This document shows positions 13,122 through 63,600 of a stretch of DNA of 64,000 nt, one piece after another. How positions within the stretch are numbered: the stretch's first letter is position 1; each line of letters starts with the position of its first letter. The DNA is taken from the NCBI GenBank assembly GCA_964199315.1, contig OZ116709.1, positions 2,666,001-2,730,000 on the forward strand, read 5' to 3'. The DNA comes from Orbicella franksi (taxonomy: Eukaryota). The notes beneath the pieces are model-generated. The model was not told the DNA's origin. It was given only the letters and a program-made list of their open reading frames with translations, and did not search any database. The position numbers and the translations under genes are program-made.

Positions 13122-14571
13122 GGGTGAAAGGTGACGAGGACGAAGACGAAGATGAGCAGCCCGTGAAAAGACAAAATTTGGGTACGAAGTTGATGTAGTT
13201 TCAGTTGCAGTGAATAAACATTTTGCCACACAATAAATATATTTACAAATACTTTGATGTTTGTATAAATATATAAGTTAAGGAAGTCCACCTTTACATA
13301 AAAAAAATACTGTCAACAGCATGACAATTTATCTTAATATATAGAGAAGATGTCTTATATCTAGTCTAACATACAGATATCATCATTATTCAGGATGTAT
13401 TCAGGTACCGACAAGGAATAGTGCTTTTGGATATTTTTCTTTGCAGAGTTCTTTGCTGGTGAATTGGTATAAAAATCGACTTCCTTTTACCTTTAATTGA
13501 TTACTTATCATGTATATTATACTGTAGCTTGGGGATTTCCAGGACAGCAGTACGCTTATTCCAATCTACAGTGCTGTCCATCAAATATGATCTGCCCAGG
13601 TTAGTCCCACAGTAATACATGAGATGATGATATTTCCTGTACTCCTCTACACAAAATCCACTCATTTGCGAAGTTTGATACTAAGTATCACAGAATGTAG
13701 TACTTTATTACTATGTATAAAAACTACTCACCCACAAGTATCCGTTCCAGGCACTTGCCTGTAGAACGAAATACCAGGTTTATGACATAAATACCATGAT
13801 ATTTCTGTTCCTTTCCAGGCAAACCACCGTGTGTTCCAAACAACAGTGGTTACAAGGGTTACCAGGGTTACGTCAATTATCCCGGATATCCTAATTACCA
13901 GTCTCCAGCTGCACCAAGCTTTCAGCCTCAAGTAGTCCCCACTCCACCCCAGTACGTAATGACTGCACCACCTGCCAAAGACGGCAAGGCCATTCCAGTG
14001 AAAGCTCGACCAACAGCGGAGCATGCTTCCACAAGGAAGGTGTCCACTGGGAATCACACGGGAAACTCGGGTGCCTTGCCACAAACAAAGGATTTAATTT
14101 CAGATGCGGACGAGTTCGCGGAATATAATGGAACAGAACAAAGCTTTGCAAGGTACAGCTCTAAGCAAAATGAAGAAAAGTACTATAACAGTTCTACCAA
14201 ACACGAAGACGACAAGGAAGATTCTTCTGAGGAGGATGACAACAAAGAATCACAAAAGAAAGAACAAACATCTTCTGATGAACCAGATTACAAGGACGAA
14301 ATCGAGAAAGAAGCTGTTGAGCAAGAGAGAGAAGATGACCGGAAAGCCGAGGAAGAGGGAGACCATAACGACGACAATGATGAAGATGATGATGACGATG
14401 AAGAGGACGAAGATGATGAAGATGAACAGAATGATGACGATGAGGATGAATCGAAGGAGGAGGGACACTCTGAGAATGCTAACACCATGCTAAAGGATGA
14501 CATTAATAACCCCGCTGAACAATCCTTTGCCGTTTCACCCACAGTGCTTCCAGGGATGTGTCCCCCATGTC
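11957..14571 (+). other. Module: signal peptide plus Asp/Glu/Asn/Ser-rich low-complexity region (about 680 aa) with a short Cys/Tyr-rich insert
   Basis: NS(D/E)x tetrapeptide repeats at about 12400-12690. Poly-Asp tracts at about 13057-13120 and 14370-14450. Dibasic sites EKR, RQKR, VKR. Insert [15 protein letters not shown]...[17 protein letters not shown]. Confidence 0.8.
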
Positions 14572-17500
14572 GTGAGTAACACGTGACCTGAGTATCATTA
14601 ATGCATTTGATAATGTAACTTGCAGAGGCTAAGCTTGATCATGTATGATACAATTTCGTGAGTAAAATAGATAACAAATCTACAAGTCAATTTCTTGCTT
14701 TGTGAAGGCCTTCGTTGTCGGAGCCAAGTAACTGAGTTAATAAACGAAGCTTTAGGGTTTAACTTCCTAGTCAAGGAAACATATTAAAATAATTTTTTTA
14801 ATTTGATTATTTTTTTTCGCACTGTTTCAGCGTCTTTGAACTGTAACATTTAGTAATGCTCACTTTAAAAGACACCATTTTTACAGCGTAAAGCAAAACA
14901 ACAGGCTAACATTTGACTGGAGTTGCCACATCTTTCGAAACGCTAATATTTTTTTTCTTTTCTTCTACAGCCAAGCCAACAAAAGCACAAGGTAATAAAT
15001 ATGATTGATTCAGCATTAACATAAACCTTATTAAACGTGAAAGTGTGCTGAAATGCTTGTTACCTGTTATCTTACAACTTGCAAATAGTCAAAAAATTTG
15101 AAATAATGAGTAAGAGGAAATTTATTTATCTTAAGACAGAACATCGCATAGCTAACTTCAAAACCGGATTTAAAAACTGGAATCTCAAAAAGAAAGTGTA
15201 CATTCTTACCTTTTTTCCTCCTTTTTTCGCATTCTCTTTTCTCGTCAGCTTGTAGTGCAAAAATTGACCTAGCTTTATTGATCGATGGCTCTTCAAGTGT
15301 TGAAAGATACGGCGTCGGAAACTTCCGAAGGATTATCGACTTTGTCCGAGGTCTCACGATGGGCTTCGCAATCTCACGAAGAAACACGCGAGTGTCCTTG
15401 ATAGTCTACGGAACAAGACCGAAAATGATCTTCAATTTCCGCAGGTTAGTCCGGAGCAAAATTATTTCGTAGTGTATATTTTTGAATGAAGAGGGGCTTA
15501 GAACTAGCGGAAAGCAAAAAACTTTCAGCGCTTGTTTTTACTTCTCAGCAGAAACGTGGTCATTACGAAAAGCCCATATATTCCCAAAGAGGCCACAATC
15601 TCTGTCACCAGCGTAATAGGAACATGGACTTCGCATAATGAACCATTCACTTAGCGATTAACGTCTATCATTATATTGGGCTTGTTTTAAAACTATACCA
15701 CTGAAATAGGTACTTCGTCCATACCCACTCGGTCTCCAGTGTTAACGAAGTTTATTTGTGTTTGACTTGCTGCCTGGTTCTGGAAATCTAAATTAGCTGT
15801 AAGCCACATTCAACAAGCAGCTCTTAAACAATTAATTTTGAACATTTCAGATACCGGAGTAACACGCGGTTGTTCACTGGGCTCAATCGAGCCATTTACT
15901 ATCCTCGGACTGGTGCAAGAACAGGGCGCGCTCTTAGCTACGCTTATAGGAGGCTTTTCGTGAGAAGTCGACGCACCCGATCTAACAAAGTTGCGGTAGT
16001 TATCACTGATGGCCGCTCGCTTGATGACGTGCACACTATTTCCAAGCAACTGAGAGCCCGCGGAGTCACGATCTTCTCAGTAGGGGTGGGAAGGTACTTC
16101 AACGCAAGGGAACTTGATTCTATGGCAACTGATCCCGACAAGACTCATGTTTTCACGTCGGATTTTAAGCAGTTGCAGTACATCACCAACGATCTCAAGA
16201 AAGCAATATGCTTGAGTAAGTGTTCTGCCTGCAGAGATTCAGCTAAAGACTTCACACGTTTTTAGAACTTTTAGCTTGTGCTGTAACTTCTGAACTGTGT
16301 GCAGAAAAGCAAAGAAAATTTCATGGTCTGTGATGACTTCAACATTGTCACGTGAAAAAGTAGTTTTTGAGATATTTAGCTACTAAACTGCAAAGAGAAA
16401 ATTCGGTGCAGATTAAAAGGCTTCAGGCGCAGACATTTCTCTTCCAGGAAAATTATTTAGAAACAAAAGGATCACGATGACAACTAATTAGCAACATCAT
16501 TCTGTGGAAGCCTTAAATGTAAAGCCACTGATTAAGATGAGTAAGGATGCTGTCGTTACTGTTTTTGTTTTTTTTACATTGTTTCTTTTCAGGTGTGGGT
16601 GGCACTCTTTCAGTTTCTAAACTGCAGCCATGCGTGTGTGGACCAACCAAACCCGTGGGTCCAACAACTCCAGGTTTGTTCAACTAGTGTATTTCTTATT
16701 AAAGTATTCGATTTAAAAGTAGCCTCAGAAAGTGACATAATTTTCAAAAAATTCTTTGCAGTGTCAAAGACAACAAAGAAGCCCGGAGTTCCAGGAGGCC
16801 CTGGAAGCCCCGGTGGACCCGGAGGTCCGGGTGGTCCAGGAGGCCCCGGTGGACCAGGTGGCCCAGGAGGACCCGGGGGATCTCGCCCTGGTCAAATAAC
16901 AAAACCAACTAAAAATCCACCAGGTACGGAATAAATCATGTTAAAAAGTTTGAATTGCCTTAGTGTCCAGCTTTGGCAATACAGTTGTACTATCGACATG
17001 ACATCGAGCAATTTTTTGCTTCAAAAGGAAACCCCGGCGGTCCAGGAGGGCCGGGAGGTCCTGGTGGGCCAGGAGGTCCGAGTGGACCTGGGGGACCTGG
17101 TGGACCGGGTGGACCGGGAGGTCCAGGAGGTCCAGGTGGCCCGGGTGGACCCGGGGGACCAAAAACAACTCCTAAACCGGGAACAACAACAAAGCCCCCA
17201 GGCAAACCTGGAGGCCCCGGTGGTCCAGGAGGTCCAGGCGGTCCCGGTGGCCCGGGGGGACCAGGCGGACCAACAACCAAGAGGCCAGGTAAGCGTTAGA
17301 ACTAAACCTTTGAAGTAAAAGAGGTCTGGCCAGTTTAGTTACATTGGTCATGAGGTAAGTCCTTATGCATTGTACTATTAATAAACTGTTTTAGATATAT
17401 ATTAAAATTTTGTTTGGTAGCGAAACCTAGAGGACACAAACAAAGGAAATTGAATGAGCGTGTTTGTTCTTTTTTCTTGTTTGTTCCTCTAAGCCTCGCT

Positions 17501-42200: not shown

Positions 42201-45200
42201 TCCCTATGACTGGAATAACTACCAGTTACCCATACCCAGTCACACATACAAATAAAACATATTACAATGACAGATCGCCATTCAGTCTTAAATTTCAAAC
42301 TATTTCTTCTTCCTTTCAGCTTCCGAGGAAGAAGAAGAAGTCTACTGCGAGCCATCGGCGCTACTCCATCGTTTGGAGGCGGGCCTCGAACTGGTGCTGC
42401 TCTCAAATACGTGAAACAAACTTTGTTCAGCGGCCGATCACGTAAAAGAAAAGTACTTTTTGTAATAACACACGACAGGTCCTATGATAATGTTGCTATC
42501 CCAGCTGCCACTTTGCGCCGCGCGGGAATCGAGATTATTTCTATTGGGGCTGGAAAAGCTCCTAGCACCTCACAGCTTCGTCAAATGGCGGGAAAACGAA
42601 CTGGAGCCATGTTCACATCTAGCTTCAGAACACTGCTCTCTATTGCAAAGATCGTTGAGCAAAAGGCGTGTAAAGGTGAGATTTTTACCTGTGAACAACA
42701 AATTTTAGATTCTTTAGCAGGTCACTGTTTTGCAGTTATCCAGGATAAAAAATATTAGATCCCACAGCGTCTAATGTCGTTAAAGTAACCCATTCTATCT
42801 TGCTACTTTTATTCACGGGATTCATTTACCTTAACTGCGATAAATTTGATGGTGCATTAATAACCCCTGCATTTTAATTGCATACTAGTATAAAATATTG
42901 CGTGTTCTATCTACCTAGATTAAATTATTTTCTGTCGTTGACTTATTTTAGGTCCCAGGCCTTTCGTAAAGCCACCACCAGCAGGTATGTGACTGACCAT
43001 TGCATTGCACACATCATGCGGGCTTATCTTTGTAGATGTTGGACCGAGCGAAAATAACTACCAATCATCTTTTCCGACTTTTTTCATGCGATGAGTCTTC
43101 TTTGTTGTTGCTGATGGATTTCGTTTTTGTTATTTACAGTTCTACCAAGACCAAAGCCTCATGGGAAAGGTATGTAGATGACCATGATCAGTTTCTATAA
43201 CACCTTTAAAAAAAGAAAGATTTAGTATCATAGAAATTTTTCTTTCTTTGTTTTCATGGCGCCAAACAACAAACGACGACTACAAGCGGTCAAAGCAACT
43301 CTTAGCCTGGAACAAACGTTTACTTTTGTTTTTTTAACTTGTAAAAATACCTCAAAAAATTGACTAAGAGATAAGGGGATTGCATTTGAATGTGTTCGAA
43401 GCATAATATTCATCATATTTTGATATTTTTTGTTTACAGTTGTTTCCCGTGCCCTTGATATTGGGTTAATCGTGGACGCATCTGCGAATGTCGCCGGGAA
43501 AAGACTTATTGGAATTCGTAACTTTTTGAAACAAATCGTGGCGTCCTTCACAGTGTCTACATCATTCACTCGCTTTGGAATGGTCGAGTTCAGCAATTAT
43601 CCAAGAAAATTGTTTGATTTCAACCGATTCCCAAATCAAGCTACCTTAATCAATGCGCTTGGTCGTGTACCGTACATGGGGGGCCAAGCAATGCTGGGAA
43701 AAGCCTTGAAGTATTCCGCAGTGAAATTGTTCTCACGGAGCCCCAGAAAGAAGGTTGCCATAGTGGTAACAGGCAAGTCACTTGACTCGGTTGCAGGCCC
43801 CGCGCGTGATTTGAGGCGCGCTGGCGTGAAAGTGGTCTCGGTGGGTATTGGAGTTTATAGCGTCCCACAGCTGCAACAGATGGCTACTAACAAACGAAGT
43901 GTGTTTGCGACAAAGTTCAAGTCTTTGAACAACATTGTCAGAGCGATCAAACAGAAAGCTTCCAAAGGTATGTTTAGTACTTCTGTACTCCTGCATTAAA
44001 CTGTAATGAAAATGTAATCAAGACTATACTGAGAACTTTTTAAAAAACCACTGCATCGTAAAACAATTTGATTTTCACAGTTTTTTGTAATCACAGAAAA
44101 AGTGAGGAGACGTCTACGTTTTAAAATTTGTGTATACTGGGTTTAATTTTCACACTTAACTATGTAGCTTGTCAAGCAATCTGATACAAATTGCGGGTAT
44201 CATTTTTTCAAGATACATTTGAGATACTTTTTAAAGATACAGTACAGCCCCTATTAAACGGCCACCCTCGGGGAAATGGATAGTGGCCGCTTAATAGAGG
44301 TAAAAAACAATAGAAAAGCCCTCATTGGGACTTTGATTTCTGGCCGCCAAATACAGGTGGCCGTTAAATAGGTGACCACTTAATAGGGGATCAACTGTAT
44401 CTTTAAAAAGCAGATAAGAATCCGAGCATGTATTGTCACTTATTAGCTGACACTGGTATTTTGTTACATTGTATTCTTTAGCTCTCCGTCCTGTCCCTCG
44501 TCCCTTGCCGGTGAGACCTCGACCAGGTGCGTACGAATTATGGGTAATCTGTGCCACAACTATTTCTTGACGTCTTTTATAGATACATGTCAAGATTATC
44601 ATGAGAGTCTTAAACCAAAGAGTAAAATGCATATCACTCACTAACTCTACTTGTCCTTGCCAACTTAGGAGGAAGACGTCCGTACAGATTCATTGGCACC
44701 TACAAAGTTCCACCCAGGAAATATCTCGGCCGGGCAATACCGATTAAAAACCCTACATACGGACGTATAATATGTGAGCGCATAGCCCGTCGGGGTCGCT
44801 ACCGAGCCTTTGCAGTCCGCGGGGGTCGTCAGTGCTTTGTTTCTCGCTCCTCCCCACGTAAGTTCATGGTCTACGGCCGAACAAGGTCGAGGAAACCTGG
44901 GCGCAGTATCAGGGTCTACATTAGACCCAGAGGTTGGTGTCATAAGTATTGTTTCTCTAGATTTTTCTATCCTTATAAGCGACCTTCACTGCTGGAAACA
45001 AGTGACAGGCATCCAGCAAATTCGAGTTTCACGTAATTATTTTGGATCGTGCGATCTTTTTCTATACAAGAAGAGTCCAACTGTATGATGTAATCAGATC
45101 AAAAATGGCTTCACACGACAAAAATTATGCTCCACGCAATATCAAATAGGGACGGTTAATCCCTTAATCCTTTTGGGACACAATTTTTCAATTTATCATG

Positions 45201-48200
45201 ACTTACATTTATTCAACAGCTCCCATTAAACCCAGAGCCCGGCCCAGAATTCGGCCTCGAATTCGTCCCAGGCTTCCGCTTCGTCCCAGGCCCCGGCCAG
45301 TAAAACTACCTTTACCAAGGCCAAGAAAACCAGGTTTGTTAAAAATTTCATTTCAGATTAAAAAAATGTCGTATACTTGATGAAAGAAGATGGTGACTTT
45401 TTTAACGATCATGTATGGCTGTTATCAAGACTGTAAGCTCTATGAATCAGCCATCTATCTTGTTTTCAATTTTTTCTAGTCCAGTAAACGTTTAACAAGT
45501 TATTTTGAATTCACTTATTTTTAGGTGTACAAATAAGACCCAGGCTTCGACCAAAGCCGCGACCAGGTATAACAGTGTTGGTTTTTTTGGGTTTATTTTA
45601 CCTTATTATCGGACTCTTGTGTTGACTACTTTGGTGAAAGTGCATACTCTGTTTCTTTAGGAGCAAAATACAGATTCTTTGGACGCTATCGTGCTCCACC
45701 CAAAAAGATACTTGGCAGCCCAACAGTGACGTTCAGAAGTCTGAAGTTTGCAAGAAAGAACTGCCAGCGAGTAGCGCGCATGCGCCGTGCCTGGGCCTTC
45801 GCTTTGCGATTTGGTCGTCAGTGTTACATCGCTCAAAAAAGTCCGCGCAAGTTTACAAAGTTCGGTTTTCCTCGAACGAAAATGCCTGGAGCACTGAAGG
45901 TTTATATCGCTAAAGGTAAATAGGAGACTGGTGTGTTGGGCGCCTTAAAGCATAATAAGAACTTCATAGAAACTATTGAATTATTTGTTTTACTTACTGT
46001 ATGGCGTTATATTAACCCGCACCTAGCCCCATTCATTTCATTGGAGTTATGCATTTCCTTGTCCCTGGGAGTTATATCAGCAGTGATTTGAGGTCCGTCA
46101 CTTGATTTGAAAAAGCATTTCATTTGTGGGGTACAATAACTGGTTTTATTTACAAATTCTTCGTGGCTTTGTTTTTGTTGCCATTGTTATGTGCAGATAT
46201 AAGGTGATATCTGTGTTGTTTTCCAGGAGGTCGTTCCATACCAATAATAAGACCCAGGCCTCGACCCAGACCAAGGCCTTTCCCCCGTCCGAGGCCCCGA
46301 CCGAGACCAGGTAGAGAAACAGTTTCTTGTTAGTTATATCTGCGCTTGTGAAAATTATGCTCTCAAAACAATACAGGTAACCTTTAGAAGTACTTGAGAT
46401 GGAGTGTAATGGATAATGTTTTGAAAGGCAGACCAAAACTCCCCAAGTGCTGGTACAGGCTGCAAACAGTGACATATTTCAGGAAGTTGAGCGAGCAAGA
46501 AGCATGAGATTTCAAGAGCTGGCTCTATTATTTGATATGGAAAATCTTCTTACGGTCCAAAGATATTCTGTGTTTTGAATCATACACTCATTTTGCACTT
46601 ATAATGTTTTCAACTATTCTCTGTTTAAATGCTGTAGTCAATTTACTTAGAGGTAATTAATTTAAATTCATTTTAACATTGTACCTTTTTATAATCTCAC
46701 TGTATATTATTTTTAGAGTGTTTATTGTAGCAAGGGTATTTTGTAAATAATGTTATCCCAATAATTAATTCATTTGTAATTAATTTTCACGACCCCACAA
46801 GCTTTGAGCTTTAAATCTTATCGTGTTTAAATAAAGAATACGTACGTATGTATGTATACTTCATATTGTTCCTTCTCTCACTACACTAAGTGATCCATTT
46901 ACAATGCGAGCAAAACTAAACAGTAGTTTGTTTATGCTTGTTTGTCTCAGGACGCAAAACGTACAGGTACAGCGGACTCTACCGACCACCACCAAAGAGA
47001 ATGCTGGGAAGTCCTATTAGGAAATTTAGAAGCCGACTTTTCGCACGCAGACGGTGTGAAAAAATAGCAAGATCAGGCAGATATCGAGCATACGCCTTAC
47101 AATATGGCCGTTACTGTTATGTTGCTCGGTTAACAAGTAGAAAGTTTACCAGATATGGACGCAGCGTATCCAGGAGACCCAGTGCTCTTAAAGTCTTCAT
47201 AAGAACCAGTGGTACGTTTTCCAACAAATACTATGTGGGGCTTACTTTGTAACTAGAACGTTAAGGATTGCCAGAGAGATTTACTAGAATAAGATTTTAT
47301 CAAAAGAGACGACCGAGCAAAATTGGTGTACAGCTTTACAGACCACTATGGAAGCTAACATTGTTTACAAAATCCATTTGCTCAACTGAGCAATTTTGCA
47401 ACAAGGCCAACCTTTAAAACTAAGCTGTCACAGATTAAGACCCCATGAGCAGCTTAAAACGAGGAAAATATCACTTTTTACATTCTAAGTGTTATAGTTT
47501 ATCTCCTGGCTGATTCAATACTGCCGCAAACTTGAGCAACGTCTTACACTGACCGTTTTCAGTTAGCAACTAGTAGCTATTTTGCTGGTTCTAATGCTGT
47601 ACATTAACTTGTGCATCTGTTATCTTTGTATTTAGGAGGCATTCTCAGACCTAGACCTCGAATCAGACCTCGACCTCGAATAAGGCCTCGACCCAGAATT
47701 CGACCCAGACCTCGAATCAGACCTCGACCTCGAATAAGACCTCGACCTCGAATCAGACCTCGACCCAGAATTCGACCCAGACCTCGAATCAGACCTCGTC
47801 CAAGGCCTCGGTTACCAGGTATTTTTTGTCTTCTGCAACCTTGGCAGGTCAAACATGGAAACCTAAACAGATTCGTTTTTTCCTTCTCTTAGGAAGAAGA
47901 AGAGTTGTCCGCAAATATCTTGGAAGCTTCCGAGCTCCACCGAGACTGGGACGACCAGTGCGCACCTTCAGACGTCGAACATACGTTGTGCGCTCGTGTT
48001 TCCGTTTAGCCCGAGCGCAAAGGGCAAGAGCTTTTGCCATCCGAACAGGACAACGAGGAGTCAAGTGTTACTTGTCGAAAATGACTTCGGTTAAGTTTAC
48101 AAGACTCGGCAAAACTCGATTTGGAGGCCTTAAGGTTTACGTTTTGAGAAGAGGTAATTTACCAACATTTAATGTGTCAGCTAAAACAGTTTCTACGTTA

Positions 48201-50438
48201 AAACAAATAACGTTTCCATCAAGTTTACACGCCCCTTACTGACTGTTCGACTTCTTTAGCCGGGTACACTCGGACTGAATGAAAATTATTCACAGATTGC
48301 AGCGAAAATAAAAAAATTGAACTTTATTTCAATATCAAATGCTCCATTGCACTAAGACAATTGAAGTTGAAATTTTCCACGATTTCTACAACGAAATACG
48401 TTTTCGTTTTCGTTGTATAATGGTCTCGGTTATCTTCTTTAAGGTTTTTTAAAGTTTACATCACTCGTCTTGCTAGCATGGTCATATCTACTAAGCCTGT
48501 GGAACTGGGTCCCCTATTGTAACCTAGCTCACTAAGCCAAAGTAAGAAAAAAAGACTTCTGTTGTAGGCAGGAGCCCGTGGCCCGGAGCCTCCATATGTA
48601 TTACACCCTTGAGTCAACATGGGCTCCTGTTATATGTAATGAATAAGCTATGAAGTGCGTAGTTAACAGACTATCCCTCAATATCTCCTAATTCAGGCTC
48701 ACCAAGACCAAGAATAACACCCCGAGTGAGACCACGAATCAGGCCTCGCCCCAGACCTTCACGTCGCGTATGGAACTATCGTCGCCTTGGTACTTATAGA
48801 GTTCCACGTGGCCGTTCTTCCCCAGGGCGCAGATACTTAGGTACGGTCAAACCAAGAATAAATCCCACCAAACAGTGCGCTCTCACGGCGCGGAAGAGAC
48901 GCTACCGCTTCTTTGGTGTACGAAGTAGACGCTACTGTTACGGAGCAAGAATTCGGATACCGCTGACCAGATTTGGCCGAACAACTGGTCTTAGTGGAAT
49001 GGCTGTTTACAAGATCGGAAGAGGTAAGTCTAAAATACTGGAGTTCCACGTGTAGATTTTTGACGTGACGAGACGTGGTCGTAATTTGTTTCAATTGAAT
49101 TTTCATGCTTCCCAGGTCCCCTTAGACCAAGACCGAGAGTGGCAGGCTGGCACTACCGCTATGTAGGCCGCTTCAAATCACTCGCCCCCAAGCGCTTGGG
49201 CCGGTTTGTTGGGCGGATAACGGGAACTAAGAAAGTGTTTAAATGTGCGCGCACTGCTAGGAAGATGGGTTTCCGCGCGTTTGCTTTGCGTAACCGAGGA
49301 GATTGTTACGTGTCGAGATATTCATCAACTTACTCCACTAAAAAGCGTTTGTTTGGACGCTTCAGAGGAATTTCTGGTACACCACGTGCCATAGATGCTT
49401 ATGTGATCGGAAAAGGTAAGACAGATATAGTGTGGTTAAGATATTTCTAGTAAAGAGCACGGATAAGTGTCATTCTGGCAAAACTTCGTTTGGTCTTCCA
49501 CGAGTTTCTAATTTGTTTTTGATAACAAAAAAAAAAAACTGCGGACACTAAAGAATACTCTAATTAGACATGGCACCGTGACAGCTCGTCCTGCTGCTTA
49601 GCAACTCTGGTGACAAAACAAACACGGGTCCTGTCGTGCCTGCTGTCGTCCATTCTCCAAAATGAGATTTTGTTTTTCACTAGTAGAAACTGGCTCCACC
49701 GACTGCAACGCGTACAGTCTGTTCAGAAATAGACCGAAGACAATACGTAGCGACCAATATTTTCACAGAACATGTCAGAAAACATAGTCTACAACGCTTT
49801 TTCAGAAAGTTGTAAGAACTGTTCAGCCTTGTTATATTTGTTAAGTGTTTTTCAAAGCGTGCCATTCAACTCAATTGTTAGTCAATCAACTTAAAATTAT
49901 CCCAGTCGTGGCCCAAGGCAAAGTGAAGCGAATATCCCTAATTAATACATTTTGAACGTAGTGGAATCGCTTTAGTTGACTATCACTCTTGAAAATAAAA
50001 CTGTTATTTGTTTCTTTCCAAGGTCGTTTTAAGCCTCCCCCCAGACCTCGTAAAGGAGGTTCTGTTTGGCATTACCGCTGGCTTGGACGTTTCCGGTCAC
50101 TAAAAGCACGAGGTCTGGGAAGGAGATTAGGCAGAGTGACAGGGCGAAAGAAAGTGTTCAGCTGTGCTATGCTGGCAAAACGCAATGGTTATAAAGCATT
50201 CGCTTTGCGCCGACGCGGTATCTGTTATGGGACTCGTTCATCTAGAGCTTACACATCCAAGCCAGTTATCAAGGGCCGCTTTAGAGCTGGTGCAGGAGGA
50301 GGACGATTCATTGATACTTACATAATAGGGCGAGGTATGTCATGCTAGTATTTTAGCTGATGTAAAAATTTCACAGGAACGAACAGTTCAAAAAACAGTT
50401 GTGGAGCGCAGTCAATACCAACTTAGAAATTTGCAGTG

Positions 50439-50484
<46 letters not shown>

Positions 50485-53400
50485 GATAAATGTCAACAAG
50501 ACGACTTTTTCGTTTCTTGGTTTTCTGTCAAGCTATTTACTGTTAGAATACAGTTTAGGCTGGATATTTGTACACTGAGATGTGTTAGTCTTATTTCAAT
50601 GCTTCGTTAATTATCAGAACACGTTCACTTGATGTTGTCGTCAATTTATTCCGTACATACGTTTTCTTCTAGGTCATTACAGACGGCCATTACGAAAAGG
50701 CAAGTACTATATTTGAAGGTTCATTTTCAATCAGGTTTTGTATCTGTATCAAAAGATTCCAAAGATTTGTCAATCTTTGGCTTTTTAGGCTTTTGTGCAT
50801 ATAGAAAGAAAACAAACCAAAAACTTCAAATTGCTACAATCCCGGTTGATAAATCGAAAATTTAATTGTTATATGAAGTGTCAACTAAATGGACACTGAA
50901 TTTTTACCATAGGTGCGGACGTGTGGTATATGTTCAACTGAAACTAAAATCAGTAGTGACACATAACGTATATGAAATAAGTCAACATGTGAACTGCAGG
51001 CGACATAGAAACGGGTTAGGAAAAGAGTTCAATTCCCGACGGGATTCGAGCCTACGACCTTTGAAATTTCTGGTGCAAAAGCTCTACATAGCTATGAAAC
51101 TGCGGAGGCTCAATCACCACTACAAAACCAAGACATCCTTATTTGATCTAATTTAATTTTCTTTCTAAAGGAGTTAGAGGTCGCTCTAGAAAAACAAGGC
51201 AACGAAGAAGAAAGATGATAAGAGCAGTTAGAAGAAAGGTCAGAAGAATTAAACGAAAGAGGGCACGGATAGCAAAAACTAGAACACTAGAAAGAAGGAT
51301 AAAAACACGTGTTAGACGACTAAGAGGTCTGAGGAGGAAGGCTGTGCGAACTGCGCAACGGGTAAGGAGTTTGAGACGATTAAGGAAACTTAGACTACTG
51401 CGACTGGCAAGAAAAGCGAAACTTGCTTTGACCAGGAGAATACGGCAGATGAAGAGGAGAATCCGTGCACGGAAATTACGGCTAAGGCGACAGTTACAAC
51501 GCGTGCGAGCAGCAAGACGTCGGGCGAGAATACGACGAGCAAGAAGAAGAGCTATGCAGCTGTTGAAATTGCGAATGAGAAGGCGTTTGCAAAGACTGCG
51601 ACTGTTGGCTCAACAGAGGAGGGCGCGTGCACTCAGAATGGCCAGGTTACAACGTTTGAGACGGTATCGAATGTTGGCCAGGTTACAAGCGAGGCAGAGA
51701 GCACAGAGGAGACGAATGATGTCGCAAATCAGACGAAGAATGCTTCTTATGCGACGGAAATTAGCTCTGAAGCAAAGAGCTCTTAGAGCTCGATTCCAAA
51801 GTAGACGACAGAGGGCTGCGCGGTTACGACTCCTGTCATATAGAATAAGGGTTCGTCAAAGAAGAATGAGCAGTCAGCTGTCACAAATCAGGAGAGGGCT
51901 GATAGCCTTATCAAAAAGAATGGTGTATTACAGGCGTTTGAGGCGTTACAAACTCCTGGCAAGACTGCGAGTTTACAGGCAACAGCAGATGAAAAGAGCG
52001 AGCATGGTTCGAGTCAGGTGGTTCAGATATCAAAAGCAGTTAGCGGCCATCAGAACCAAACAAAGAATGCTAGCGCTGAGGCAACGACGTGCTCTTCAGA
52101 AGTTTCAGGCATTTCAAAGAAACAGAAGATTGATGTTCATGCAACAACAGCAGAAACTCAGAAAATTATTGCAGACGATGAATTCACGTCGAGTTCGAGG
52201 TGAGTGAGTTTAATTGAAATTCTTTGATTGAGATTACGCTGTTTATAATGCTTTGTGGGTGTTGATGTGGTGGGGTCGCTTATTGGAATGAGGACCGAGT
52301 TGGAATAGAATCCAGCCTTGCTAAACGCGAATCTATCCGCGAGTGCTTTAAGTATTTCCACAAAAAAGACGAAATTCGTCAAAAAAAAAAATTGTGAATC
52401 ACGTTTGAACCATTCTACGACGGCCACATGGAAATGAACAAGTCATTGTACAGAGACGCTATCCAGTGAACTGTTAACTAAAATTGTGCTTAACATTTCA
52501 ATGCAGCTGGGAAGAAGCGAGGAGATATTCTAAACAAGGAGCTAAAGAGGAAGAATTCATCCAAACAGATAAAAAGAGGACCTAACACTGGTAAGAAGGT
52601 GGTTAAAAATTTTTTGAGAAGTAAATCTCTGTGATCAGTTATTAAACAGACGCACGGTAACATGGAATCTATCTGTTTCATATAATTAAAAAAACGATAT
52701 AAAATATAAATGACGTCATCTAGATATATACGTTTATCCTCTGATTGCTCATAAGTAAGAACCAATCAAAATGCGAGAATAATTTGACTTATCGTGTATA
52801 TTATATAAAACTCGTTTGACCGGTATGACCATGACATCTGATTGGTTCACAGCCAAGCTTATCTTCTCTCGCTTGATAAGCCCGACACCACCCTGAAGGT
52901 TGGGCGGTCAGTTAACCCCGCTACAATATACACATCTCTTTTTAACACTTATGTAATATTCGATGATAAAAGTCTTAAAACAATACCACGCATGCATAAC
53001 CAATTATTCTCCCACAAAATCTCTCGTTTACCAAAATGACATGCATCTCATTAAACTAGTTTTGGATTGACAAGTCATTATTTCAGTGCTTATCACTTCA
53101 TGTAAAACCAAGTGATCTAGTTATCCGAGATGTGCTGCTATTGTGGATTAAATTAAAGTTCTATGTGGCTCGATTTTCGGTTTACCCTTCAAAGCACGTT
53201 ATTATGGAAGACTATAAATGGAATTTTCCCAACATTTCGTTTTCAGTTCCAAAAGAGTTCCATTCAGCAGATTACTTCTGGTCGTTTGAAGACTCTGAAG
53301 GTAATCAATCCGATGATGCTGTTCGGAAGCGTGCAGCGAAGCTTATGGGAGGATCGCTTGTTGTTGCGACAAGTGATCGAGGTCACGTGGCAGACACTGG

Positions 53401-54574
53401 TAAACCCAGAGGTTGGATCTCCCTTGGAGACTTTAAAGGTGATAAGAGTCAAATATTTTCGTTCGCGCGCGATTGGTCTAAAACGCGACACGTAACTGAC
53501 TATTACCCGACTAAAACTTGGGGATGTCCGAGTGATATTCCCCAGTTGTCAAAACTGCGTGTGTTGCGAAAAATATTTGAAAGATGAATAAGGAAATCTT
53601 GGTGGTGAAAACACGATGAGGTTCTCACCGTCTTGACTGATGTTTTTTCTCAACAGGAAAGTGCTTCAGCGACCCGGATCGGTGTAGAGATCAAGGAATG
53701 ACAGTAATGGCGTCCCTGAAACTGGATAAGGAATATTTCCATAAGAAATCTAGCACCTACTTCCTATCAAGCGGAGGTCAAACTACCAAGGCTCGAGGAT
53801 TTGCTTTCCTGCATCTTCTCGGCCGCTACATCGTAATACTCAGCACAAAAGACAAACAATGGACACTGGAAGCTCGAGATCTTCCAGAAGGATGGGCCAA
53901 CGTAGCCATTACTTGGAAAAAGGCCGGTTTACTGAAGATGTATGTAAATGGAAAGGAAGTGGCCAGTGGAGAAGCTATGAGTGTTTCAAGGCCAAAGGAT
54001 CAGTACTCGAGCTTTGAAGTTGGGCGGCCGAATAATTCTCACTCACCAAACTTTAGAGTGCCTTTAGAAATAGACAACATTGCTCTCTGGGAAAAAGCTC
54101 TCGCAAGCAAGGAAATTAGCGCATTGGCCAAGAAAGGTATTGAAAATTTAAGTGGACTATAGCTTTCCTTTTTTTCTAAATTACCTTTGACAAAAATTGA
54201 AAACAAGCAGTGAAAGGAGCTGATTACCGAAAAACGGCAATGACTAAGCATAATTAAATACGCATTTTATGAATGGTCTGGGATGAAAAATGAAAACTGG
54301 ATTCCATTCTTAGCCATGTTCGATCAGCTTTAAGGTTACCACTTATGTAACATAGAAATTGTCTGAAGTCTTTCACAATCGACACTTACTCATATATTCA
54401 TATTTTACAATAGCTTTATGTTTTTTTCATTTCTTTGCTTCTTTTTATTTTCAAAATATCACTCATCTTTTCTATATCTGTTATACATAAATAGCTTGAC
54501 TTTGCTAATAAACTCACTCTATCTTCCATTTAGATTTAACGAGAGCGTCCAAACAAGAGGCAATTAAAGAATAA
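11957..54574 (+). CDS. Giant secreted multi-block protein (about 6,157 aa, 60 coding exons): acidic region, vWA, (GGP)n, vWA, 9x LamG-like, 2x vWA, 7x Arg-rich WSC-like, Arg-rich helix, LamG/pentraxin-like
   Basis: Signal peptide [21 protein letters not shown]. Manual exons: 11957-13181, 13528-13599, 13819-14571, 14971-14991, 15249-15444, 15851-16215, 16593-16673, 16762-16923, 17028-17288, 17737-18414, 19376-19738, 21460-21822, 22368-22709, 23158-23874, 24948-25565, 25727-25825, 26661-27191, 27801-27848, 28114-28743, 29128-29169, 29729-30358, 31043-31093, 31267-31905, 32471-32503, 32584-33059, 33328-33493, 33905-33937, 34091-34720, 35324-35386, 35947-36585, 36864-36920, 37097-37747, 38312-38356, 38777-39415, 39761-39820, 40023-40655, 41045-41086, 41483-41654, 42320-42675, 42952-42984, 43140-43169, 43440-43967, 44482-44526, 44669-44932, 45220-45333, 45525-45566, 45661-45915, 46227-46310, 46951-47211, 47636-47818, 47893-48153, 48697-49023, 49116-49415, 50023-50334, 50673-50699, 51171-52199, 52507-52590, 53247-53438, 53657-54136, 54534-54574. 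Sum 18,474 nt, phases compatible throughout, ends TAA overlapping AATAAA. Only one signal peptide was found in the span. It could still be more than one transcript. Confidence 0.8.
15249..16215 (+). other. Module: vWA domain 1 with intact MIDAS
   Basis: [16 protein letters not shown]...ARTGRAL...VVITDGRS...IFSVGVG...KAIC; two exons joined by a phase-2 intron. Confidence 0.9.
18818..19104 (+). mobile_element. tRNA-derived SINE
   Basis: Head GGCGACGTGGCCGAATGGTT...GGTTCGAGCCC (A/B-box-like), body GTTGTGTTCTTGAGTACGACAC...GTGTGTAAATGGGTACC...CTTCATGCTACTGAAAC, tail GACTTTACCTTAC. Intronic. Confidence 0.75.
20494..20697 (+). mobile_element. Probable non-LTR retrotransposon 3' ORF fragment containing a 69-bp tandem duplication
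   Basis: Peptide [23 protein letters not shown] occurs twice (units start at 20504 and 20573), followed by [15 protein letters not shown]. Intronic; the LINE assignment is by resemblance only. Confidence 0.4.
21093..21283. repeat. Palindromic element
   Basis: AAACAATAGCCTCCA...AAAATATGCTCGGATAT...TTGTCC...CATTATC mirrored by GATAATG...GGACAAATATCCGAGCATATTTT...TGGAGGCTATTGTGTTT. Confidence 0.75.
26345..26533. mobile_element. MITE with GGCC termini flanked by TAA (PIF/Harbinger-like by end structure)
   Basis: Left TAAGGCCCTGGTCAAACGTCGAACTTC...TGAGACGAAC; right GTTCGTCTCA...GAAGTCTGACGTTTCTACCTGGGCCTAA. Confidence 0.6.
26661..27191 (+). other. Module: vWA domain 2 (degenerate MIDAS)
   Basis: [16 protein letters not shown]...DVRIGLV...KTGKAL...ILLTVGKS...IFSIGV...KAC; single exon. 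Confidence 0.88.
30861..30974. repeat. Palindromic element
   Basis: AACAATTATTCCAT...TTGGATATGAAGTGAT..TAACCAAC mirrored by GTTGGTTA..ATCACTTCATATCCAA...ATGGAATAATTGTT. Confidence 0.8.
35745..35817 (+). tRNA. tRNA-Lys(CTT), intronic; two stem mismatches, possibly a pseudogene
   Basis: GCCCGGCTAGCTCAGTCGGTAGAGCATGAGACT-CTT-AATCTCAGGGTCGTGGGTTCGAGCCCAACGTTGCGCG, 73 nt, followed by TTTTT. One C:C mismatch in the acceptor stem and one in the T stem. Confidence 0.85.
36687..36718 (+). pseudogene. Isolated 3' half of tRNA-Lys(CTT)
   Basis: CAGGGTCGTGGGTTCGAGCCCCACGTTGGGCG followed by AA and a T11 run; no 5' half upstream. Confidence 0.8.
41483..43967 (+). other. Module: vWA domains 3 (41483-42675) and 4 (43440-43967), both with degenerate MIDAS
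   Basis: [14 protein letters not shown]...ARIGLVSYS...RTGAAL...VITHD...KAC, and [15 protein letters not shown]...TRFGMVEFS...LGKAL...VVSVGIG...KAS. Confidence 0.87.
41885..42205. mobile_element. MITE inside the vWA3 intron
   Basis: Left AGGGAGTTTAAGAAAACGACGAC; right CGTCGCCGTCGTGATTACTTTAACTCCCT (imperfect inverted match). Confidence 0.65.
44238..44399. mobile_element. Tc1/mariner-like MITE (TACAGT...ACTGTA)
   Basis: Inverted ends TACAGTACAGCCCCTATTAA / TTAATAGGGGATCAACTGTA, with internal GGCCAC/GTGGCC repeats. Confidence 0.65.
44669..50334 (+). other. Module: seven Arg-rich two-Cys repeats (degenerate WSC-like) with Pro-Arg linker exons, about 800 aa
   Basis: Repeat exons at 44669, 45661, 46951, 47893, 48697, 49116 and 50023. 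Shared pattern YR..G.(Y/F)R...R.LG...C...AR....AFA.R....C(Y/F)......F...G.......V(Y/F). Confidence 0.8.
50443..50481 (+). repeat. (AG)n microsatellite
   Basis: About 19 AG units, intronic. Confidence 0.95.
51171..52199 (+). other. Module: 343-aa Arg-rich, Pro-free, predicted helical segment in a single exon
   Basis: Acceptor TTTCTAAAG at 51170 and donor GTGAGT at 52200. Roughly one third Arg, interspersed with L/M/I/A/Q; one Glu and no Asp. Confidence 0.85.
53247..54136 (+). other. Module: C-terminal LamG/pentraxin-like domain of a different subtype
   Basis: YFWSFE...[19 protein letters not shown]...SSGG...W.NVAITW...LKMYVNG...[11 protein letters not shown]; two exons. Confidence 0.75.
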
Positions 54575-56434: not shown

Positions 56435-58214
56435 ATGGAGACGAAGTTGGTTCTTTATCTTGTGGCTCTTGTGGCTCTTGTGTTTATGTGTGGTAAGTGA
56501 ACTGATCTCCGATACCTTGTGTTTACGTTATTTGTCCTGCTTGGTTGTCAAAGCGAACTTTAACCTCGGAAGATAAGAAAGTCGAAGATAGTTTTAGAAT
56601 TAATACGTGGAAGACCAGCGACGATGAAAGAATCGCTAGCTTGAAGTTTTGTATGTTTTGTAGAACATGAGATATTGCTGTACCTAAATGATAAGAGACG
56701 AGTCTTACATTCAGTCCCCCGCACCTACAGTTTGTCCTGCTTTCAACCATGCAAACCAAGAATTGAAGCGAAGCTCAAGTTTGAAGATTATTGTACAGAG
56801 ACGACAGTAGTAAGAGATTATTGTCAATTTGTTATTCATATATAGGAATCGGCTGCGGCACAGTTCACGAGAAGAAGAGACGTTTGACCTCACTGGACTT
56901 AGCCGCAGGTAAATAAAGAGAATCGAAAGAACTTCCGAAAATTGTTATGTAGTGTGTATTAGCTTGAGTGAGAGGTCAGACATGAGATTATCTGACCTGG
57001 GTCAAGAGAGAAAATCCTGTGACGCTCATAGCGTGATGCATTATGGGCATGATATTTGACACCTACTTTCATTACTCAATCCCAGAGGTACTCATGAGTA
57101 TCTTCGTAGTTGCGTTGTGGGAAGATTCCTCTGTTCGGTGGGTAGAAAGTGGTAGAGATACGTCTAATTATTGCGCAGCACAATTTTGCAAGTGGGTTAA
57201 CCATAATATGTGGTTACATCAAAGCAAGTTCTACATGGAACGAAATTTCCTCTAATTGGAACACGTTACGGGTGGTTGTTGAGGACATCTTATAACGACA
57301 CTTTTAACTAGTCAGTAAAGGAAAGTAGATACAAGAGGATTGCAAGAGGGTAAGCCATACTGTAAAGGTCATAAGTGAATATTGTAAATAACGATTAAAA
57401 GAGTGTATGAAGGATTTACTCGTCTGACTAAACAGCGAAGTATTTTTAACGTCAAGTTTCTTTCGATGTTACAGAGAAGAGAGTGACGGTTTGTTCAAAA
57501 GGAAAGAGTCCACTTACATGCGTGTCCCCTGGGTCAGCTATCGCTATTACCGGAGTGTTTTGGGGTCGAGAATCTTCAGACATTTGCCCCTCGGAGGACG
57601 GGGATCCGGTAACAAATTGTCCCACAGCTCCCGAGGCCGAACACATTGTCAAGGAGATGTGCGAAGGAATGGGAAGTTGCGTTTTGGAAGGAAAGGCCGA
57701 CAAGTTACAACATGGAAAACACTGTTATGGCGTCCAGAAATATCTCCTCGTAAATTACACATGTGTGCCTCAGAAAAAGGAAGCCATTTTGTGTGACTCG
57801 GAGAGATCGATAATCTCCTGTCCATCTGATTGGATACTTAAAGTCAACTCGGCGTTCTGGGGCCGTCAAGCAACGGACGTTTGTCCATCGGTAAGAGGAC
57901 AGGAAGTCTGCCCCGGGGCATCAGAGACTGTCTCCAAACTGAGAAGCAGATGCAACAATATTCCTTTCTGTCCTGTTAAGGCATTTTACAAGGAGTTACA
58001 AAATGGAGGTGAAAACTGCCCTCATGTAAACAAGTATCTTGTTATTAACTACAGCTGTCGGCCCAGTCCCGATATAGGACGGCGCGGCCAGCTCGGGCTT
58101 ATTCCTCTCTCGGTTTACCGCGGACTCAGAAGCAGATCACGTATTTGGAAACCTAGTGATCTCAAACTGAAAGCTTCACAGATAACAAAGATAAAACAGA
58201 AGGATAAACAATGA
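56435..58214 (+). CDS. Secreted tandem SUEL/Gal_Lectin (rhamnose-binding-lectin-type) protein A, 3 exons, 286 aa
   Basis: Exons 56435-56492 (METKLVLYLVALVALVFMC), 56846-56908, 57475-58214; 861 nt in frame. Two 8-Cys domains with FWGR and KYL.(V/I)NY.C motifs. AATAAA at about 58251. Confidence 0.85.
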
Positions 58215-60642: not shown

Positions 60643-63600
60643 ATGGCAACAAGCCGTTTTATTTACCGTGTATTTGCTGTTTTTGCTGTTCTGGATGTAG
60701 TGACGCTCGCGTATGTACAAGGTAGGCAAGCTGTATTTAGGACTCAAATTCCTCAACACGCCAAAAGTGGCGTGCTACATAGATACAAGCCTTTTTTACT
60801 TCATGTCAAACATTGTCGGCTAATTTACCCTCCAACATTCGATGCTAATGTTTGTTTTAGGCAGCCTGCCGTTAACTTGGCCAGAGACCAGAAATCTCGA
60901 GCTTCACTGATCTTGGTGATGATGACACTTACATACAGTGCAACCACTGTGATACGGTTAACGCCATTTTGTGGCAACTTATGTTGCCATAAAACAAAAG
61001 CTCAGTCGATGTTATTTTTCTCCATTAATACCGTCAACGCATTATATAATTATAGCGCCTAAATTTTGGTGGCCCCTTGATTTTTTCAGTTTTTATTAAT
61101 TTATTTATTGGTTGTCAGATTAACCGGTTTCCACTGTACATACAAAATCAACAATGCTTACAATCACTGGAAGGTTTTTTTCGCTGTAAACCACTTACAA
61201 ACTCGCAGTAGTATTTATATGGATGTCGTGTCTTAACCGTCTCACTCATTCTCATAAGCTAATCAGATTAGCAACTCATCAGGTGGCGTACATTAAACAT
61301 CTTCTACAAGATATCTATTGCTAGACAGTGATGCAGTGTGTTGGTGTTATTCTGTGTTATTTAAAATACTGCCCTGGATATGATGTAGTTGATGGAGCAA
61401 GGTTACAGTGCAATGGTGTGGAACACGATCTAAAAAACTAGGTCCGCAATGCCCACAAATTGTAAAGGGCGAGCTAGACGCCTGAGTGATACATTAGCCT
61501 TGTAGAGACAAAAGCGCATAAAATTATCTATTTCAATTTGGGATTTTAGGTGGAGTTCACAGTCAGGAAGCGGGAGCTGGTTTGAGTCAGATTGATCTAG
61601 AAGCCTGTGAGTAGCGAGTTACTCTTAACAACCTTCTGCTTCTCACTCTTTCATTTATTTATTTTCCATTCGTAACGGAATCTTTTATTTTTAGCAAAAG
61701 AGATCACCGTATGCACGACACAGAGGAAACCACTGAGCTGCTCCTACCCGGGCTCAAACATCGCGGTGACTGGTGTATTCTGGGGTCGCAAGTCTGGTGC
61801 AATTTGTCCTTCAGATGATGGTGATACACAACTCGACTGTTTCACTGCGCCGGAATCAGAAGGCATTGTGAAAGGAAAGTGCGAAGGAAAGGAATCCTGT
61901 GAACTTGAAGCTAGACATGCCTTATTGCAAAATCCAGGAACTCAGCATTGTCCAGGAGTAAACAAATACCTGACTGTTAATTACACGTGTGTGCCCGATG
62001 CTAAAGAAGTCGTGATCTGCGATTCCGAGAACTCCAGTTTGACCTGCCCAGCCTCCTGGAAGATTGGTGTGAACTCTGTATTCTTTGGACGGCAGTCAAC
62101 TACCGTTTGTCCAGCGGAAAATGGACAGACCATGTGCACTGGAGCACCAGAGAGTCTTGGGATTGTTAAGAAGTCATGTGACGGGCTCACAAAGTGTGAC
62201 GTGCATGCGTCTTACGACCAAGTGCAGAATGGCGCGGAAAACTGTCCCGGGGTTCAGAAGTATTTGATTATTAACTACAGCTGCAAACCGCATCCAAATA
62301 TAGGTAAGATGGTGAAGAAATAGAGAAAAGCATTATAAAGCACCAACTGACATAAGAATAAATCTTGTGAAATTGACCTTTTTCAAGGACTGACTGCTCT
62401 CTTTCACTTACATAAAGAACACCGATAATAAGACTTTCCACTAACAGCGAACGGCCTCTACAGTCCCAATCGGTCGCAGTCTTGTTTTGTTCTTTCACAT
62501 AACAAATCTTAGTAAGTATTTATGTTGATCATGCACTTACAAAGGAAACAAATATTTCTCATTGTAACTTTCTACCTGAGGTATATTAAATGGAACTTCG
62601 AAGAATCTTGTTGGAGTTAAGCTTTATGGAGATAGGGAAGAAAGAATCGGGGAGGGGAGGGAGGGGTGGAGAGTCGGAGGACAGAAAGAAGGAAGAGTAC
62701 AATGAGGGGCCGTGGCTGACCGGATCCCATTGAGTTGTGAACGTCTGTCCTCTTAAAATCTCTTCATTCTGCTGAAAAGATAACTGCGATAACCACGACT
62801 GTGGACTTTCTGTTTAGGTTGTGAAGGTACTCTAAGCATTACGTTGTTTTTTTTCCATTCCTTAGGAACCGAGGACGATGCCATTCAGAACGACCAAGAA
62901 CCAGCCCCCGTGAAGGCTCCTGCTCCCAACAAACCTAACCCAGGCCTTGCACCAAACGTTGTGAGTGATTTAAAGCAGTTGGACGGCGGACAACAGATTG
63001 AGAAGGTACCGGCCGAGGAGGGAAACAGTATTGTTGGAGAAAACTTGAACATTGGACGGCTAGGCATGGGAGGCTTGAAGGCCTTGGAGAAAATCAATAA
63101 CCTTATCAAGGCTTCCGCCGAGACTCAAGATGGCGACGATCCTGGACCAGATAATAGTTTGACGGACGAGCAAGCACAGGCAATTGAGCGAATGATTATT
63201 GAAGGAATCCATCACATTAAGAAAAAACCTTCACCTCCGGCTGGTACACAGAGGGCCTCAATTCCACGTCAGAAGAACGATCAGAAACCTTTTCCCAAGT
63301 TACCTCAACCAGAGAAACGAAAGGGACTCCCGATTCCGTTCCCGCCAAAACTTGGAGCTCAAAGAAAGGATCCCAGAGCGGTCCCAACACCAGTTCAAGT
63401 GGGAGTTCCCAGGCTTCAGAAGGAAGGACCGAACGGGAAAGGGGGAACGTCAAGCAATCAGAATGAGGAAAAGAAAACGGTAAATGAGAGTAAAGGATCT
63501 TCATTGAACGGACCAGGCCAAGGTCCTGCCAAGATGAGGCCCATTCCTGTTCTTAAAAGTCAGCCTGCAGACGCAAGAAAGAAATCACAGCCTGGAAAAC

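Follow-up and report, generated by a model that had tools for sequence, protein, structure and literature searches.

Seven arginine-rich, two-cysteine modules encoded by a coral gene are probably diverged WSC domains in a strongly cationic array

WSC domains carry eight conserved cysteines joined in four disulfides (C1–C6, C2–C4, C3–C5 and C7–C8). In yeast Wsc1, C49–C69 and C53–C71 tie helix alpha1 to strand beta4 and are both common to PAN/Apple cores, and C27–C86 and C90–C98 are WSC-specific bridges (PMC9024836). WSC-domain proteins are also listed in sea-anemone venom, with role unknown (PMC6627431). Here we describe seven basic modules with only two cysteines each, encoded in tandem at 44669–50334 on the plus strand of a 64,000-nucleotide stretch of the coral Orbicella franksi (assembly GCA_964199315.1, contig OZ116709.1, positions 2,666,001 to 2,730,000 of the forward strand; hereafter the window). 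The window is intron-rich eukaryotic DNA of ~41% GC. Our comparisons support reading them as diverged WSC (PAN/Apple-type) domains that share common descent with canonical members via four-Cys intermediates.

Three-frame translation of 43.3–52.4 kb placed the modules in various frames, one per phase-1 exon. They are ~88 amino acids (aa) long (range 85–97 aa), and each contains 13–23 Arg and 5–12 Lys (R+K 23–29) together with 0–2 Asp and 0–1 Glu (D+E 0–2), giving a net charge of about +24 per 88-aa module. Their isoelectric points (pI) are 11.6–12.0, compared with 4.4–8.6 for 10 canonical WSC domains of the same genome, which have eight Cys. Modules 2–7 have exactly two Cys each; the open frame of module 1 has four, the final two of which lie beyond the best phase-1 donor at 44932, and the spliced 795-aa array contains 14, that is, 7 x 2. 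A MAFFT alignment of the seven sequences spanned ~89 columns at 33–45% identity, with G8, L/G19-20, C35, A39, C55, G69 and G88 invariant, and a profile built from it matched exactly these seven places in the window at E<1e-3. The array is not a chance pattern, since orthologous two-Cys basic modules occur in other coral assemblies and its exons are spliced in polyA RNA.

Standard models hardly recognized the modules. At the gathering cut-off of Pfam WSC (PF01822, 27.8 bits) none of the seven was detected; the best scored 15.1 bits (E 0.028), the second 13.5, and five gave no hit. In a set of 30 two-Cys modules, weak WSC matches appeared in 13 and were the commonest weak hit (best E 6e-4). Direct hhalign comparison of two-Cys with canonical eight-Cys domains was in register and weak (P 5e-4), that of the seven modules alone was too weak to be used as proof (P 0.0026), and a PDB sequence search with the two-Cys profile returned WSC chains only, at a sub-threshold E of 0.24. 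The weakness of these direct links is what speaks for a non-WSC explanation, in which convergence or Arg-rich low-complexity bias accounts for the resemblance and the predicted fold is an artefact. The links through four-Cys modules, however, are strong and full-length: hhalign related the 30 two-Cys to 43 four-Cys modules at 99.1% (E 4e-19, 89 columns), and the four-Cys modules to canonical eight-Cys WSC domains at 98.5% (E 4e-15). When the genome was searched with the seven-module profile, basic four-Cys exons on the same chromosome (5.796–5.806 Mb) were recovered at E 7e-13 to 1e-8, along with many other four-Cys exons, several of which coincide with above-cut-off PF01822 hits; four-Cys paralogues exceed that cut-off with 28.7 and 29.6 bits. 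An exhaustive profile search of 1.84 billion representative proteins gave 278 hits, which form a graded series of two-Cys basic, four-Cys basic, four-Cys neutral and six-Cys modules. The two-Cys basic modules among them were found only in unnamed single-exon open reading frames (ORFs) of coral assemblies, without a named gene model, and the four-Cys neutral members include Nematostella A7RFD4 (WSC domain-containing protein), Montipora foliosa XP_068699032 and sequences from Styela and Branchiostoma. An ESM-feature search likewise returned a WSC-bearing cnidarian cluster.

Structure prediction pointed to the same family. AlphaFold2 folded module 3 with a predicted local distance difference test score (pLDDT) of 86 from a mixed alignment, and of 87 with a predicted template-modelling score (pTM) of 0.75 from an alignment of two-Cys modules only; both models have the identical secondary structure E-H-H-E-E-H-E. 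Foldseek against the PDB ranked yeast Wsc1 (7pz2) first for both models, with template-modelling scores (TM) of 0.69 and 0.62 and probability 1.0, followed by human Kremen1 (5fws-5fwv, ~0.64), the WSC domain of glyoxal oxidase and then weaker PAN/Apple domains. The top WSC matches overall had TM 0.62–0.70 and probability 0.98–1.0; the small size of the domain limits their E-values to 2.5e-3 to 0.1. The modules are accordingly predicted to share with Wsc1 and Kremen1 a PAN/Apple-type core and its long L5 loop. This fold match is independent of canonical sequences, and, together with the intermediates, the graded series in Cys number and charge, and the nesting of two-Cys modules inside basic four-Cys modules described below, it largely refutes the non-WSC explanation, which we regard as very unlikely. 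The initial annotation of the window had recognized seven repeats with exactly two Cys and almost no acidic residues, and had read them as a WSC-derived fold remodelled into a compact polycation that profile searches would miss. The repeat and residue counts proved right, the descent is supported through the four-Cys modules and the WSC-first fold ranks, the pI and D+E values fit a remodelled polycation, and PF01822 was sub-threshold or absent in all seven. Two of the checks that it proposed agree: WSC domains came first in Foldseek, so that its refuting condition of predicted structures unlike WSC did not arise, and the profile search reached the WSC-annotated A7RFD4.

Residue changes were mapped by column in a 137-sequence alignment of all module types (two-, four-, six- and eight-Cys). 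The two Cys are the sole invariant columns among these 137 domains, and the two-Cys profile aligns them to C49 and C69 of Wsc1. Because both are invariant, we infer that the surviving inner pair forms one native bridge, C2–C4, from helix alpha1 to strand beta4. Of the Cys in the four-Cys pattern (GC..., ...KC..., GG.C and S..C), the first and the last were found in 0 of the 7 modules and 0 of 24 sampled two-Cys modules. Among two-Cys modules, C1 is replaced by R/K in 67% and by T/L/S in the remainder, C3 is Ala, as it already is in four-Cys forms, C5 is G/T/V, C6 is deleted, C7 is lost and C8 is replaced. One Gly column of the CGG motif in loop L5 is kept (78%), its Cys and second Gly being gone in most; two conserved Gly, one before Y..FA and one in GG.C, became Arg, and the tail motif GG.WAN.VY is reduced to G...(L/I)(K/D)(V/A)Y. 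The Gln of FAVQ is Arg in 89%, the conserved Asp after GC(F/Y)K is A/P/S and never R/K, and the Asn of AN.VY is Leu. The early claims that only the inner Cys pair was kept and that GC had become GT, GR, GL or GS thus hold, the columns of C2 and C4 alone retaining Cys. The claimed replacement of Asp, Gln and Asn by Arg or Lys stands for Gln and fails for the other two, and the late Cys is indeed absent, although by deletion and not by substitution.

Splice joints were obtained by aligning contigs of a polyA RNA run (X4) to the window, and at borders without an RNA joint the best phase-1 acceptor and donor were chosen. The X4 contigs contain GT-AG joints at 47211/47636, 47818/47893 and 49415/50023, and a 1,745-nt contig joins module 6, module 7, a 27-nt mini-exon and an exon from 51171, running 1,054 nt beyond module 7 through the mini-exon into an Arg-rich exon. 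Every joint of the array seen in RNA is phase 1. RNA runs contain up to 41% of the sampled words from the window, and the public runs that contain the stretch carry coral or coral metagenome labels. The resulting 12-exon model, which begins at 44669, is one continuous frame of 1,140 codons with a net charge of about +390, and all its exon lengths are multiples of three except the last, which measures 1,037 nt to the stop at 52207, or 1,029 nt when cut at the donor after 52199. The model sets Pro-Arg linkers before modules, as three separate exons or else as the 5' part of the exons of modules 5, 6 and 7. The exons, with the VWA exon that precedes them, are as follows.

43424..43967, plus strand: VWA-domain exon (Pfam VWA E 1e-31) with phase-1 donor AAAG/GTATGT, compatible with the phase-1 acceptor at 44669.
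44669..44932, plus strand: module 1 exon (profile match; best phase-1 acceptor and donor; covered by RNA contig).
45220..45333, plus strand: putative Pro-Arg linker exon 1 (translation; phase-1 AG/GT sites; needed in frame for the open model).
45661..45915, plus strand: module 2 exon (alignment, profile match, phase-1 splice sites).
46227..46310, plus strand: putative Pro-Arg linker exon 2 (translation, splice sites, open frame).
46951..47211, plus strand: module 3 exon, the module used for folding (3' end proven by RNA joint 47211/47636, GT..AG).
47636..47818, plus strand: Pro-Arg linker exon 3, (PRPRIR)n (both ends are X4 joints; frame fixed by the phase-1 joints).
47893..48153, plus strand: module 4 exon (5' end proven by RNA joint 47818/47893; predicted donor).
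48697..49023, plus strand: Pro-Arg linker and module 5 in one exon (translation, splice sites; an X4 contig begins at 48695).
49116..49415, plus strand: module 6 exon, opening with a short PRP stretch (3' end proven by RNA joint 49415/50023; predicted acceptor).
50023..50334, plus strand: module 7 exon (both ends set by the 1,745-nt X4 contig).
50673..50699, plus strand: mini-exon of 27 nt, HYRRPLRK, whose donor is GC (the X4 contig's loose end aligns here and then to the exon at 51171).
51171..52199, plus strand: Arg-rich helical exon, 343 codons (X4 contig continuity; consensus phase-1 donor G/GTGAGT at 52200).

Three places in the transcript evidence deserve mention. The intron after the mini-exon (50700, plus strand) opens with a GC donor, GCAAGT, rather than GT, and its join is seen in the RNA contig. 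An X4 contig enters the putative 92-nt intron at 49024–49115, which has stop codons, by 77 nt, and this overhang may represent intron retention or pre-mRNA. Within intronic 46600–46890, RNA-contig depth is far above that of the surroundings, with a TA..TA 120-nt apparent joint and many loose ends; this segment is probably a dispersed repeat expressed elsewhere.

In a maximum-likelihood tree of 54 modules, all 24 two-Cys modules formed one clade (99/91), nested within basic four-Cys modules of a paralogous giant gene with P0085 and P0146 as sisters, and every module of the window had an orthologue of another coral assembly as its partner. Because the alignment spans just 99 columns, the tree leaves its deeper forks unresolved. 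From this topology and the orthologue pairing, it would follow that Arg enrichment came first, that the C1–C6 bridge was lost once, and that the array is older than the splits between those species. The ratio of nonsynonymous to synonymous substitution rates (dN/dS) was 0.14–0.15 for two module pairs; synonymous sites were saturated in all others. A diverged coral contig (L023) contains six two-Cys modules in a row, each with R+K 22–29 and D+E 0–2, adjoining a Laminin_G_3 ORF, and on another (L024) a module is followed by an Arg-rich helix and then Laminin_G_3. In Nematostella A7RFD4 (P0003), an R/K/E-rich helical N-terminal region of ~290 aa precedes WSC-like modules, five in number and of the four-Cys type. 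The combination of a charged helix and such modules therefore predates the coral gene.

These data also bear on whether the array is a non-functional remnant of a four-Cys WSC gene. The loss of three disulfides and the very few reads in one deep polyA run would suit decay; the spliced frame, however, is open over all 1,140 codons and correctly spliced in RNA, dN/dS is ~0.15, and diverged corals show the same two-Cys state and charge in their orthologous modules. Conservation thus refutes decay, to which we give next to no credence.

The array probably belongs to a much longer gene. Exons at 11957–43996 on the plus strand begin with a signal-peptide-like start and Asp/Glu/Ser/Asn-rich blocks including poly-Asp, followed by a VWA exon, ~9 kb of Gly-Gly-Pro blocks spaced by TKPTKP, a second VWA exon, some nine Laminin_G_3 exons of basic character and two further VWA exons. 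The acidic blocks at its start are these.

11957–13198, plus strand: strongly acidic ORF with signal-peptide-like start and poly-Asp (ORF translation).
13959–14579, plus strand: strongly acidic block (translation).

The VWA exon at 43424..43967 is probably part of the same gene as the modules, and, judging by strand, phase and the architecture of the paralogue, the upstream acidic, Gly-Gly-Pro, VWA and Laminin_G_3 exons and the array probably form one giant gene. The protein would be secreted, judging from the flanking VWA and Laminin_G_3 exons and the signal-peptide-like ORF. At the other end, the gene probably continues downstream, because a consensus phase-1 donor lies at the end of the Arg-rich exon; this exon would be internal to the gene and not a C-terminal tail. 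Laminin_G_3 exons that are not obviously basic lie after it at 53132–54162 on the plus strand, and the gene may run on into them. On the coral contig L024 (3293–3943), Laminin_G_3 that is not obviously basic likewise follows the Arg-rich exon. Exons with paired Cys-rich lectin-like repeats at 57483–58214 and 61766–62323 (plus strand) are probably a separate gene.

The charge of the encoded protein is extreme. The array with its linkers (795 aa) contains 200 R, 54 K, 3 D and 2 E, a net charge of +249, together with 89 Pro and 83 Tyr+Phe, and its Arg:Lys ratio is ~4:1. The Arg-rich exon to the stop (345 aa) contains 119 R, 24 K, 0 D and 2 E (net +141), with zero Cys and zero Pro. The linkers are (Pro-Arg-x)n repeats (45220–45333, 46227–46310, 47636–47818 and others). 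An Arg-over-Lys bias with Tyr/Phe is typical of proteins that bind oxyanions such as sulfate, phosphate and carboxylate, and the excess of Arg over Lys with many Tyr/Phe therefore fits binding of such groups. We consider it fairly probable that the array binds or condenses a polyanion in a multivalent manner. In this mechanism, the WSC fold would act as a compact, disulfide-pinned scaffold showing ~25 guanidinium/ammonium groups plus Tyr/Phe per bead. Each module is predicted to keep the hydrophobic core and one of the four ancestral disulfides, nearly all exposed positions being Arg or Lys, and would follow a stiff Pro-Arg linker, the array leading into the 343-aa Arg-rich helix. Such a string of beads could bind, condense or cross-link its partner through multivalent electrostatics. 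Its partner might be a sulfated or carboxylated glycan of mucus, the poly-gamma-glutamate of cnidocysts or an acidic matrix protein, among these perhaps the Asp/Glu-rich block with which the gene probably starts.

The same composition could serve an adhesive or cement, in which the polycationic array and helix would coacervate with the gene's own acidic N-terminal block or a separate polyanion and set as glue, possibly in larval settlement, tissue–skeleton anchoring or spirocyst threads. Oppositely charged protein sets drive the cement of the sandcastle worm, and the extreme charge, the co-occurrence of Arg with Tyr/Phe, and the two acidic blocks and long Gly-Gly-Pro blocks upstream on the same strand are all in keeping with such a role. 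The acidic and Gly-rich exons, however, are joined to the array by inference only, there is no evidence of 3,4-dihydroxyphenylalanine (DOPA) or phospho-Ser and no expression site, and gluing would be a special case of polyanion binding and not a separate mechanism; we therefore hold it to be unlikely.

The linkers raise a different possibility, that the protein is a precursor polyprotein cut into basic WSC beads and/or Pro-Arg peptides that act against microbial envelopes, with an acidic pro-region as neutralizer. The linkers presumably resemble Pro-Arg-rich antimicrobial peptides such as Bac7, and an acidic-then-cationic layout, if the upstream block is in the gene, is that of many antimicrobial peptide precursors. 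Yet R-x-[KR]-R sites number only 3 in 795 aa, all inside folded cores and 0 at module borders; the modules have been conserved as whole folded units, one disulfide included, and their conserved orthologous order suits a structural array better than a peptide magazine. We judge a precursor of this kind quite improbable. A depletion of furin sites across the whole array (3 versus 15.8 +/- 3.7 expected) was discarded as evidence against processing, being caused by linker periodicity. In the modules alone the count was 3 versus 6.7 (p ~0.08), and in other species 15 versus 19.1 (p ~0.2), neither being significant.

Beyond polyanion binding by the array, a wider and more tentative proposal is that corals have conserved giant secreted 'super-polycations', in which WSC, Laminin-G and VWA folds are re-surfaced with Arg and mounted on Pro-Arg rods and Arg-rich helices, serving as the cationic organizer of a polyanionic secretion. 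These would pack, for example, cnidocyst poly-gamma-glutamate or sulfated mucus, with the Asp/Glu-rich N-terminal block as a built-in neutralizer in transport. We regard this proposal as possible, though less likely than not.

Several points weigh against the reading of the array as a WSC-derived polyanion binder. The case for binding a polyanion is drawn from composition, and the same bias towards Arg could exaggerate how far the two-Cys modules group as a single clade. Continuity with the upstream VWA, Laminin_G_3 and acidic exons was read from strand, phase and the architecture of the paralogue, not from RNA. The spliced RNA came from X4, a run labelled with an organism code unlike that of most runs holding the stretch. 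A deep polyA run bearing the window's species label (X23) gave 4 reads, all on the intronic repeat, and is uninformative on level; because it holds almost no reads, expression of the array may be restricted or low.

Literature on WSC with coral, cnidarian, VWA, laminin G or nematocyst, and on poly-gamma-glutamate with basic proteins, gave no description of these proteins; a paper on the Acropora nematocyst proteome makes no mention of WSC, VWA or laminin, and one on the Nematostella matrisome makes no mention of WSC. About two-thirds of the array falls in predicted tryptic peptides of <7 aa, which could partly explain its absence from coral proteomes. The array marks a family overlooked by domain annotation, and it offers a limit case in which a disulfide-rich lectin fold appears stripped from four bridges to one and shifted from neutral to ~30% Arg/Lys, yet is under selection. 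For protein engineers it would be a natural minimal WSC/PAN scaffold, and, if the super-polycation proposal is true, evolution would have produced in the one-disulfide WSC bead a minimal scaffold for the display of charge. Should the protein organize mucus, matrix, adhesion or the contents of cnidocysts, it would supply the missing cationic counterpart to the well-studied acidic coral proteins.

Among known systems, the WSC domains of Wsc1 (7PZ2) and Kremen1 (5FWS) share with the modules the predicted topology, in which five strands form a sheet around a single helix and a long loop wraps it, and the core positions G before C1, A/C at C3, F/Y-A-L, G..C, Y-G, G and V-Y. Canonical domains have four disulfides, whereas the modules would have one (C1–C6, C3–C5 and C7–C8 lost) and lack the CGG Cys; canonical domains are roughly neutral, whereas the modules carry ~+24 per 88 aa and fall below the Pfam cut-off. 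The surface aromatic clusters of fungal WSC domains give way to an Arg/Tyr surface in the modules. Closer still are the four-Cys WSC-like modules of cnidarians and deuterostomes, with the same length and one phase-1 exon per module. The basic ones, sister groups of the two-Cys clade, have R+K ~22 and D+E 1–4, and four-Cys modules are accompanied by KPKPRP linkers and by exons for VWA and Laminin_G_3. Compared with them, the two-Cys modules have also lost the C1–C6 bridge, have a degraded GG.WAN and almost no acidic residues, and show Q-to-R and two Gly-to-Arg changes at conserved sites. The PAN/Apple N-domain of HGF, a weaker structural match that includes the NK1–heparin complexes 1GMO and 3MKP, has the core fold in common and shows that a PAN-type core can bind the polyanion heparin, but it does so with a local basic patch, in a single domain with another loop insertion and no repeat array. 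Eosinophil major basic protein offers a parallel in another fold, being a C-type lectin fold made strongly cationic, secreted with an acidic pro-piece and binding polyanions; it differs in that its fold is unrelated and in being a single-domain vertebrate granule protein. Against this background, the modules are a more extreme form of the known WSC family, set in a gene family that is itself undescribed.

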